From assembly GCF_052425735.1 (NCBI RefSeq), contig NC_135761.1, forward strand, positions 17,050,001-17,114,000: 64,000 nt of DNA, read 5' to 3'. The notes under the pieces were generated by a model that worked only from the letters and a program-made list of their open reading frames with translations, was not told where the DNA came from and did no database searches. A program made the position numbers and the translations under genes. Shown piece by piece: positions 48,949-52,619 of this stretch (within the stretch, counting starts at the first letter, position 1; every line of letters begins with the position of its first letter). Source of the DNA: Oculina patagonica (lineage: Eukaryota).

Positions 48949-49791
48949 TGTTTCTTCGAAGATCCGTGACCGCGCGATGGAAAATATAAGCGGATGTCGA
49001 TTATAGATTGAAAGAACCATAGTTACCTGGGCTGTTATACAATCATGTGTCAACGAGAGTTTTGAAACATCACACCTGCATCAGTATCCTTTTAAAATTG
49101 TAAAATTAATCAACAACATCCTCTGTCGCGATATAGAATCCAGAAAAAAATATATGTGTCATAAAAACTGGAAAGTCGACTCTGCCGATATTTCGTGGTT
49201 ATTAAAAACATTTCATCAGGGCAAAAAAAAAAAAAATGTGTTAGATAATATGTGAAGGGGTCGGCTATTTTGCGAGTTGCGAGTTGCGAGTTGCGAGTTG
49301 CGAGTTGCGAGTTGCGAGTTGCGAGTTGCGAGTTGCGAGTTGCATTCAACGAATATGTCACTGAGTTATTATACGAGTCAGTTTAATTTTTTTAGATTTC
49401 TTTTAAAACACGGAGCGATCCTGTTTAACGAGGGTGAATTGTTCGGCCTGTCAGTCACAGATTCCAATGAGACGATTCCATTGGTTTGGGAACTGAAATC
49501 AACTGGCTTTTGGTCAATGTTTGGTGTGGCGTGATCCAAACTTATCTCGTTTTTCTGAACTAGATTCTCGCGTATGGGGGTTGTTAGTAATCGGCGTATT
49601 AAACGGCGTAAGGAGAATCGGCGTAACAATAATAGCTAATAATTTTTTCACGTGAAACTGGACAAACAAACAGTAAATATATGCCATATAAAAATGAAAG
49701 GTTTTTCTCACCCCGATCGAGACAATGAAACGTACACAGGCAAAGTCAACGAAAATAAAAGGGAGTTTGTAAAAGATAAAAAGAAAAAGAA

Positions 49792-49902
49792 AACCCACAA
49801 CAACGGGTATTTCGAGTTGGTCACCCATCCAAGTACTAACCCCGCCCAACAGGGCTTAACCTTGGCGATCAGACGAGCACCGGTGCTTTCCATGTGGTAT
49901 CA
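49792..49902 (-). pseudogene. 5S rRNA-derived sequence (left arm of internal foldback)
   Basis: Minus strand ATACCAC..CTCGTCTGATC..GTTAAGC..GTTAGTACTTGGATGGGTGACC..ATACCCGTTGTTGTGGG, followed by a T-run. Confidence 0.85.
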
Positions 49903-50043
49903 AAAAGAGAGCGTAAATCAGCTAATAAAAGTTAAGTCCAGTTTTAGCAGGAAAGCGCCAAATTGTTCAAAAGATCCATTTAAACCAGGTATTTCTTTTT
50001 CTCTATTTGCATGACTCTTATAACCCTTTGTCTCGTCTGAGCC

Positions 50044-50156
50044 TGATACCACAAGGAAAGCATTGGTTTTCGTCTGATCGCCAAAGTTAAGCCCTGTTGG
50101 GCGGGGTTAGTACTTGGATGGGTGACCAACTGGAAATACCCGTTGTTGTGGGTTTT
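50044..50156 (+). pseudogene. 5S rRNA-derived sequence (right arm of internal foldback)
   Basis: A box AAGTTAAGC, C box TACTTGGATGGGTGACC and a TTTT terminator are present; the 5' strand of helix I is diverged. Confidence 0.85.
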
Positions 50157-52619
50157 CTTTTCTTTTTTTTACAAACTCAGTAACTTTTAGGAAGCTTCTA
50201 TTTTCTTTCTAACGCTTTCGTTGACTTGGCTTTATACGTTTCATTGTCGCGAGCGGGGCGAAAAAGTCTGCAAACTCAAAGGCAGTCGCTCTTCTCTACG
50301 AAATCCTCACTCGAAAACCTAACTCGTAATTCCGGCTAGAGATTGACATCGAAGAATTAGAAAGATATAAGAAGCCTTAATTTTATTGGATATATTTAGT
50401 GTTTGTTTGTTTGTCCAATTTTACGTAAAAAATAAATAATTAAAATAAAACACAGAAAAAATCTCGTTACGCCGTTACGCGTTACCGCCGATTACTAATA
50501 CCTTGGCCAGATAAAGATTGCTTCGTGTTTGAACTTCTGGCCCATAAAACAAAATAATGAAACGATTAATATATTCAGCATTATGTGTTTGAGCGTTTTA
50601 TACATGTCGCAAGAGTTTGAATTTTGAATTTTCAGCATTAATGTATAAATTGTTTAAGCTTGTATGGAAAGCATTATTGGTAGTGTATGTTGTATTTGAG
50701 GTTGTTATTTCCATATAAAGAGGAAGGGATCTCATTTAAAAAGCAAAATTTGCGAAGCTCTAAAATTGAAGCCAACAAAATGCAAGAGCGGTCTTTGAAG
50801 GCTCGCTCCGTGTTTAATTTGAAATCAATTTTGTGCATCAGAAAAATGCGACTTGAAATATCACGGCATGGCATAGCTACTTTATGTTGTTAAAGCGTTC
50901 CTGTTATCAGTGCCGAGTTTCGTTGCACCTTGTTATTCACTTGTTTCTATTTGAAGAGTTACCCTAATAAATTAAAATAAAGGCATCTATCTATTAGTTT
51001 TAATTTTTTGTTAAAGGTTACCAGTAACCAGTTACCCCTTATGCATTTGAATAAGTTATATTAAATAGTTATTAGACAGTATTTGTTTTATTTGTAGGAG
51101 ACTCACTAACTTGCAAACTCGCAACTCGCTAACTCGCAACTCGCAACTCGCAACTCGCAACTCGCAACTCGCAACTCGCAACTCGCAACTCGCAACTCGC
51201 AACTCGCAACTCGCAACTCGCAACTCGCAACTCGCAACTCGCAACTCGCAACTCGCAACTCGCAACTCGCAACTCGCAACTCGCAAACTCGCAACTCGCA
51301 TATTAGTTAATCTCCTAGGCTACCAATAGATGAAATCAATATATATGCACACAATTGTATTTTAATTTTAATAAAATTGATAAATCAAGGCAATACTGTA
51401 CTGTAATTGGGGTGGAACTATTATGTGTGCAATGAAAAGTAGTGTTGATCTTTGATATTTTTCCATATAAGAACAACTTTCTTTTTTTCAGGCTGAATGT
51501 GTTCTTATATAAATGGTACTTTATTTCCTAAAATCAGGCCTGGGTGTTCTTAATCCACTTGTTCTTATACGCGAGTTTTTACTGTAGCGCAGTGATTAGA
51601 CTGACGCAAGAGTTGCATTATTGTACAGCAAAGCATGATGGGAATAAAGTAAGATGATGAACATGTGATTCAAGTATGGCTGTCGTTTGACTTTGTGTTC
51701 GTCTGAGTGATTTATTACTTCGTGTTCTTATTATAATCAGCATTGCAGATGGCTATTCTAATATTTTAGCTTTTTATAATGTCAATACCTAAACGTTAGA
51801 GCTATGGAGAGAGTTGGGATCTTCCTGGGACAACCAAGGTAGAAGTTTAAAGGCACTTACAAAATACACAAAATACCGAAAAGTGGAATCTGACTCATAA
51901 AGATATTCAATTTGTTCTTAGGGTGAGGATTTTTCTACCTTTACGATATTCTTACCGATATTGAATTCATGTCGGTACTATACTCAGTTACACAAATCGC
52001 AATGCATCATTCAACCTACCCCATTGCAGTGCCGGTATAAGCATAGCCAGCATTTAACAACGACGGGTTAAAACAAGCGGAAACAGGGATAAGATATCGC
52101 TTCATTTTCAAGCATGCACTTCAGAGAGTATGCAACCGCAGTCATCCTTGAGTTTTTAATAAATGTATACGATTGCTTGGAAGTGAACAGACTGTTCACA
52201 ACCCTCTTTTAAATTTCTCGTAATTTTCTACCATCACCCCTCCTTGCTTTCCGCTCGCTTTATTTCTCTCATGCTCTTTAGCGTTGAAAAATAGAGAGGC
52301 TGTAAACATTCTTAGAAGTGAATGCAAAGAAACGATTTATAAAAGCAAATAAATGTTTCTCCCCTGTTGTTTCAATCTACCATAGGAAAAAGTGTTCAAC
52401 AGTTTTGTAACAATCCTTAGTCCAAAGTACATTCATGGTTATAAATATTAAAATCAATTCTCAGTCTTGATAATATATAGCACATTTAGACGCCACAAAA
52501 TTAAAGAAACGTAATTTGAAAAGTTAGCATACATTCTTTTTCTAATTATTCCGGAAGGGTCTACTTCATTTTTGGCTAAGAATTTATTTTTGGTTTACTT
52601 TTGCGAAAGATACAATTGC

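Follow-up and report, generated by a model that had tools for sequence, protein, structure and literature searches.

A 64-kb window of the Oculina patagonica genome (C4:17,050,001-17,114,000 of the 529-Mb assembly) contains, inside a nested foldback structure, a palindrome in which two sequences resembling 5S rRNA point away from each other. What kind of element unites two 5S-derived RNA polymerase III (Pol III) units in this arrangement, and does it make use of them? As shown below, with all positions given relative to the window, the inner palindrome belongs to a family of Mutator-like (MULE) DNA transposons, of which it is an old, non-autonomous foldback copy. That such a family captured a piece of the 5S gene and that its copy in the window became nested with other elements is, in our assessment, a quite likely explanation of the locus as a whole.

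Searching the window with the Rfam 5S model (RF00001; gathering score, 38 bits) returned two matches, a plus-strand match of 66.8 bits at 50041-50154 and a minus-strand match of 63.1 bits at 49792-49910 (true 5S homology at ~49792-49901). This bore out an initial annotation, made from the sequence alone, that had noted two outward 5S-like sequences with T-run terminators and with the 5′ strand of helix I lost. The rightward unit is of a type that we refer to as "alpha" and the leftward unit of a type that we refer to as "beta" (see below). Both are ~88% identical to the genome's true 5S gene, the first ~10 nt of which are missing, and at 5S nt ~45-93 they are the same as the host gene except for one C>T and a 2-nt change of GCC to AAC/ATC in box C. 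At the sequence level, the units retain box A, the intermediate element, and box C, which make up the internal control region, as well as a T-run terminator; the candidate Pol III terminators are T-rich runs directly after the left unit (49774-49791, minus strand) and the right unit (50155-50172, plus strand), and a T-run is found at this place across the family copies described below. The RF00001 alignment flagged the helix I pairs as non-canonical in both units, while the remaining helices were largely kept, in agreement with the annotation. With disrupted helix I pairing and without the first ~10 nt, the window units are 5S derivatives and not functional 5S genes, despite scores of 63-67 bits against a threshold of 38. 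The arms bearing the 5S units (49778-49902 and 50044-50168) show 93% complementarity and enclose a non-palindromic central loop (49903-50043), which separates the 5′ ends of the units; over the 70 nt on the loop side, the two arms are only ~47% alike, i.e., unrelated, as determined for 26 elements.

The inner palindrome is dispersed in the genome. A first look yielded 406 candidates, and all 40 candidates that were scored matched. A diagnostic 22-mer that separates the units from the true 5S gene had 128 exact matches genome-wide versus none for a reversed control, and many of these matches form minus/plus pairs ~285 bp apart. In all 30 loci that we fetched, the units lie inside termini of one of two types, A or B. 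An inverted unit pair was scorable in 26 of them, while four showed a single unit at the motif threshold used; eight representative loci gave two Rfam 5S matches each. A-type copies are ~1150 bp long and start with GGTTGTTAGTAATC, followed by CG[T/G]AACGG repeats, and four of five short copies (L003, L006, L007, and L008) have perfect 9-bp target duplications. B-type copies are 1.45-1.6 kb long and start with GGGTGACCCTATTCGG, followed by GGCGGAAT repeats, and all four simple copies (L022, L023, L028, and L029) have perfect 8-bp target duplications. What the two lineages have in common is limited to the central part, which comprises the loop, both units, and a further ~100 bp to either side, with 77-80% identity. 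Family-wide, the arms are ~490 to 1100 bp long with up to 98-99% identity and consist of the termini followed by tandem sub-repeats. Long composite terminal inverted repeats (TIRs) with sub-repeats together with target duplications of 8-11 bp, typically 9 bp, characterize Mutator/Foldback elements. The genome-wide copy number, the inverted pairs, and the fixed duplications at eight short copies thus support the suggestion in the initial annotation of a TIR-type mobile family with paired divergent 5S units.

A search with the A-type terminus identified paired termini separated by 8.4 kb on C8 and by >10 kb on C2. The element on C8 (L053 positions 501-8899) is flanked by the 9-bp duplication TCTACAAGT, and its right terminus is 96% identical to that of the short copy L008 over 108 nt. 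It contains an open reading frame (ORF) of 774 aa with a SWIM zinc finger (20.2 bits, above the Pfam cut-off). Among eight aligned homologues of the protein, SWIM was detected in all eight, MULE in seven, and Transposase_mut in three. Three intact copies of this ORF are present in the genome and are 99-100% identical, while other MULE transposase loci in the genome, such as those at C3:3.05 Mb and C4:37.44 Mb and five copies identical to one another, one of them at C1:9.85 Mb, are only ~30% identical to it. Homologous transposases (P0002-P0008) are also encoded in other cnidarian assemblies. A sequence search of the PDB with the transposase profile gave nothing meaningful. The C8 element has a single 5S unit (59.7 bits), which is located ~300 bp inside its left end, points outward, and lies downstream of the transposase ORF on the same strand. 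Similarly, a 7.4-kb element with B-type termini (L054) contains one 5S unit (52.6 bits), but a transposase could not be recognized in it. Because the 8.4-kb transposase-coding elements have A-type termini, the short foldbacks are non-autonomous Mutator/Foldback derivatives. The annotation's idea of an undescribed family therefore stands with regard to a TIR-type, 5S-bearing element and is amended in that this is a Mutator/Foldback derivative, the full-length relatives of which carry one 5S unit. In this scenario, family members would move by cut-and-paste using transposase supplied in trans by the 8.4-kb elements with the same termini, and insertion leaves 9-bp target duplications, or 8-bp duplications in the sister B lineage. 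Cut-and-paste movement is evident for the family, and the window copy presumably moved in the same way.

Tandem units of 2005 bp, located on C1 and an unplaced contig, contain the true 5S gene (117 bits). Homology of the transposon units to this repeat is limited to gene nt 11-120/128, with 85-88% identity and no shared spacer. Thus, a host fragment with an identifiable parent is located between transposon ends, as in Pack-MULEs and Pack-TIRs. The 5′ truncation and the derived bases are identical in all units, and every foldback that we checked has one alpha and one beta unit. The beta unit has a T at aligned position 13, and its upstream sequence is collinear with the 8.4-kb element; the alpha unit differs in its upstream sequence, has an A at position 13, and carries TT in the loop C region. 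Because the same alpha/beta differences are found in A-type and B-type copies, the unit sequences point to one 5S capture and one early inverted duplication, both before the two lineages split. A single capture of host 5S nt ~11-120 without spacer would then be the source of all units. In the full-length element, this fragment now lies ~300 bp from one end, and the short foldbacks have the 5S arm in both orientations, giving two units that point outward from a unique loop. Most simply, the "two promoters" are a single 5S fragment within an arm that is long and inverted. As for how the pair arose, the ancestral element may have had a unit in both long arms, or the pair may trace back to one founding foldback.

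In the window, the inner 5S foldback lies inside a middle element, M, which lies inside an outer element, O. The nesting noted in the initial annotation is real; two layers had been claimed, and M (~49407-50814) is a third between them. O (49257-51314) is a foldback-type element that carries all inner layers as cargo. The inverted heptamer arrays ascribed to it were found using Tandem Repeats Finder as 10.6 copies of TTGCGAG (49270-49343, plus strand; 100% matches) and 26 copies of AACTCGC (51116-51300, plus strand; 97% matches) in opposite orientation, and stretches of 74-80 nt in the right array are 98-100% complementary to the left array. O has a single other composite copy, at 14.91 Mb on C2 (L002, G000:C2:14910124-14914075), with 91-95% identity. 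Homology between the two copies stops exactly at the ends of O, and the C2 copy is flanked by the 9-bp target duplication TGTGGAAAG; around the window copy of O, no target duplication was seen. The exact ends of homology and the duplication at C2 show that O moved together with its cargo, i.e., that it transposed at least once after the nesting.

M has short inverted termini, AACACGGAGCGATCC and a near-complement, with a 28-nt inverted match between 49395-49422 and 50799-50826, and belongs to a separate dispersed family. In other M copies (L044, L045, L046, and L050-L052), both ends are common, while the interior, 430-560 bp, is unrelated and lacks 5S sequence. The inner foldback, annotated at ~49578-50502, does have the end sequences quoted for it, and comparison with the family sets its true ends at 49579 and 50502. 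It is a decayed A-type non-autonomous Mutator-like element, the termini of which match the A-type terminus, and based on the junctions in M copies, it takes the place of ~450 bp of M interior. Its two 5S units are 94% alike, while the arms outside the units and outside a second conserved block (see below) are only ~57% alike. This inner copy is old and probably immobile and now travels only as cargo of the heptamer-armed O. Because 31-mers of the locus occur in DNA sequencing runs under four organism labels, the insertion in the window is not very recent; these 31-mers are also present in some coral-associated virome samples. We note that M-type elements are dispersed elements of ~1 kb with flanks ending in TA/TTA. 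We also note that the C2 copy of O is located in a C2H2 zinc-finger-like tandem coding repeat, in which collapsing the 9-bp duplication restores the repeat register.

Do the 5S units matter to the element? Based on mean pairwise identity among 58 arms, the 5S-derived part is the best-conserved segment (0.85-0.93 versus 0.66-0.79 for the flanks in A-type arms and 0.89-0.99 versus 0.87-0.95 in B-type arms). Box A and the intermediate element (nt 45-71), which lie outside the motif used to pick units, have values of 0.90 in A-type and 0.98 in B-type arms, and the promoter region has the highest conservation within the arms. Because neutral decay after insertion should hit all parts equally, this excess of conservation argues with moderate confidence that the 5S part of the propagating lineages is under constraint. 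A second conserved block (core, TACGTTTCATTGTC) is located ~70-110 nt distal to each unit in A-type copies, B-type copies, and the 8.4-kb element; in the window, it forms an inverted pair (49704-49743, minus strand; 50226-50265, plus strand) with 83% complementarity. We considered that this block could function as an RNA hairpin and rejected this possibility based on its weak consensus fold (−6.4 kcal/mol) and compensatory changes in 2 of 12 pairs. Our guess is that it is a protein-binding site.

We mapped reads from three size-fractionated small-RNA runs (X21-X23) and one polyA run (X24), all from one of these four labelled organisms, on positions 49350-51100, i.e., excluding the heptamer array. 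Small-RNA reads fell only on 50058-50175. All but one of them carried C, the true-5S base, at 50098 (T>C), and overhangs consisted of adapter or true 5S sequence. These small RNAs are therefore genuine ribosomal 5S fragments, and the small-RNA production proposed in the initial annotation was not recovered from the window copy in the three libraries. Transcripts of other family copies would not map to the window copy at 95% likeness.

With these data, we weighed what may have kept the 5S sequence in the family. We incline slightly to the view that the 5S internal control region is kept by selection on the transposon, probably as an assembly site for TFIIIA, TFIIIC, and Pol III that affects the chromatin or regulation of the element, and not as the source of a stable RNA. 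A bolder version, that a Mutator-like lineage adopted the 5S internal promoter as its own cis-acting module and kept it through two lineages and hundreds of copies, is one that we put forward tentatively and consider rather unlikely; here, TFIIIA/TFIIIC/Pol III assembled near the end of the element could, for example, maintain access to that end, protect it from silencing, or set the timing of its activity. If true, it would be the first known case of a Pol III type-1 promoter that serves a cut-and-paste transposon. Alternatively, the 5S piece may have been picked up in the manner of Pack-MULEs and persist without any role simply because it lies inside arms that are copied. MULE and foldback elements are known to capture host fragments, e.g., Pack-TIRs such as Ssk-FB4 (PMC8277862), the captured piece is 5′-truncated and unable to form helix I, and we saw no element-specific transcripts. 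However, both lineages have retained the fragment, as have short and full-length elements alike, no part of the arms evolves more slowly than its promoter region, and the T-run has been retained too. We regard passive cargo as a serious candidate with somewhat less than an even chance.

Two further explanations fare much worse. The persistence of the locus under four organism labels and the likeness of its 5S units (94%, compared with ~57% for the rest of the arms) would fit a takeover of the window locus by the host, which might use it, e.g., to insulate the neighbouring genes from each other in the manner of TFIIIC-type insulators or to produce hairpin RNA. However, the same pattern is found in the C2 paralogue and in the whole family and so is not specific to this locus, and no small or polyA RNA from the window copy was detected in the runs analyzed, making host takeover very improbable. 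Even less credible is that the two units are independent SINE3-like insertions of short interspersed elements (SINEs), or an inverted remnant of 5S rDNA, unrelated to the surrounding repeats. While SINEs with a 5S head exist in several animal groups (PMC10946416), each unit in the coral family is directly followed by a T-run without a body or tail derived from a long interspersed element (LINE), the units are all truncated at one 5′ point and have their derived bases in common, and there is no homology to the 5S spacer. Moreover, arms occurring elsewhere only as independent SINE3 copies would have spoken against the initial annotation, and instead all 30 loci have their units inside A- or B-type termini, 26 of them with a scorable inverted pair.

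Several observations weigh against the preferred explanation, in which a Mutator-like foldback family captured a 5S fragment and has kept it under selection. The MULE match of the 774-aa ORF is weak (17.7 bits versus a Pfam cut-off of 27.6 bits), and this ORF was assigned by domain matches. For the B lineage, a transposase partner was not found: neither the 7.4-kb element L054 nor the 2.5-kb L056 has similarity to the A-type transposase or to the second ORF of the A-type element. The junctions of the inner 5S foldback in the window, compared with M copies, revealed no target duplication, and its own insertion is thus deduced from the family. The distal arms of several young copies are 97-99% alike but their two 5S units only 91-94%, so that a simple picture in which one arm was duplicated is incomplete; either the centre is older than the arms, or the arms have been re-homogenised. 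Some of the excess conservation of the 5S segment could be due to structural heterogeneity of the flanks among sub-families or to the choice of loci. Finally, no element-specific RNA was detected on the window copy in the three small-RNA runs, for which reads were untrimmed and inserts of less than ~30 nt may not map, and the polyA run gave no reads on 49350-51100.

How does this family compare with known elements? 5S-derived transposable elements have been tabulated only as retroelements, i.e., SINEs of the SINE3 type and the long terminal repeat-type elements Cassandra and Ajax (PMC10946416, a 2024 review), and a full-text literature search did not identify a DNA transposon with a 5S-derived module. 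Such a module in a cut-and-paste transposon appears to be new, while the Mutator/Foldback architecture itself is already known. Also new here are the autonomous relative with a single unit, the alpha and beta types, the extent of the captured 5S piece, the nesting in three layers, and the negative read evidence. Drosophila FB and root-knot nematode Tm1 elements combine composite arms and a MULE-type transposase with duplications that are mostly 9 bp long (PMC3169594). Like these elements, the coral family has long composite arms in which short tandem repeats make up a part, duplications mostly of 9 bp, and a mixture of short non-coding members and members coding for a Mutator (MULE) transposase. 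It differs from them in carrying a 5S-derived Pol III unit, which has not been reported in FB or Tm1, the centre of Tm1 consisting of a histone-hairpin motif or nothing (PMC3169594). It also differs in that its sister lineage makes 8-bp duplications and in that the arms of several copies extend palindromically past the termini. Pack-MULEs and Pack-TIRs, which arise as MULE and FB elements capture host fragments (PMC8277862), likewise have a fragment of a host gene between transposon ends that is amplified by transposition. In contrast to their protein-gene fragments, the piece captured in the coral is the body of a Pol III gene with its internal promoter, is present in the autonomous element itself, and is more conserved than the rest of the arm.

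Among retroelements, SINE3/AmnSINE1 and other 5S-headed SINEs similarly have a 5S-derived segment that keeps box A, the intermediate element, and box C. In these SINEs, this segment is a head without a terminator after it, followed by a body and a LINE-type tail, and the elements use reverse transcription, whereas the coral family has a T-run after the unit, inverted termini, and fixed-length duplications. Based on the T-run, the inverted termini, and the 8- or 9-bp duplications, we rejected classification as a 5S-derived SINE of the SINE3 type. Cassandra elements, which are miniature terminal-repeat retrotransposons (TRIMs) of plants, and Ajax of nemerteans resemble the coral family in having one 5S unit per terminal repeat and two per element. 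However, Cassandra and Ajax have direct long terminal repeats and use reverse transcription, while the coral family has inverted repeats with units diverging from the centre and uses cut-and-paste; a Cassandra-type TRIM was ruled out because the repeats are inverted and the units divergent. CMITEs of Acropora (PMC2872659) are also coral non-autonomous elements with an internal region that is better conserved between families than the termini. A relationship to them was ruled out because CMITEs are ~100 bp long, have TTAA duplications, are linked to piggyBac, and have unrelated TIRs (PMC2872659). 5S-derived retroelements need a Pol III promoter for their RNA intermediate (PMC10946416), whereas a DNA transposon has no such need. 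The retained and slowly evolving 5S promoter in a Mutator-like element, found even in its transposase-coding copies, thus raises the question of what a platform for Pol III factors does for a cut-and-paste element, and the presence of intact 8.4-kb copies and many short derivatives in one genome makes this case directly testable. In practical terms, the >100 false "5S loci" that the family contributes will confuse rDNA annotation and fluorescence in situ hybridization in O. patagonica.

In seven loci (L024, L025, L009, L014, L004, L005, and L010), the palindrome continues for 300-430 bp past the normal A- or B-type termini. The flanks in these palindrome-extended composites are exact inverted complements without a direct duplication, and the composites are themselves multi-copy, with 6-bp duplications. 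This suggests that longer foldbacks arise by inversion duplication of an arm together with its flank rather than by nested insertion. Specifically, insertion of an A- or B-type element at the centre of an outer palindrome was ruled out for L024/L025, L009/L014, and L004/L005 because inverted complementarity of the flanks reaches right to the termini and no direct duplication is present.

During these analyses, we made additional observations on 5S-related sequences. The 27-nt unit motif matched >120 metagenome contigs (L057-L136; JGI Ga0056xxx, Ga0209xxx, and Ga0126xxx), each with one copy of a repeat that has a tRNA-like head, a 5S-like core (box A to box C, with an exact 27-mer in common with the coral units), and a conserved tail. 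This repeat looks like a tRNA/5S hybrid SINE of some animal host. We rejected these matches as members of the coral family; they are tRNA-headed SINE-like repeats and uninformative with regard to corals. In the O. patagonica genome, foldback units recur on one strand at a spacing of 2.52 kb in G000:C6:38484925-38489992 (partly L015), forming a short tandem array rather than dispersed copies. In G000:C8:33281857-33299944 (L053 and beyond), two intact 8.4-kb elements adjoin in opposite orientation, with their ORFs on opposite strands. Lastly, variant full-length 5S genes (94-110 bits) are present outside the main 2005-bp array in G000:C10:9461610-9469043, C12:2022362, and C9:29288711, and those on C10 form a cluster with a spacing of ~518 bp.

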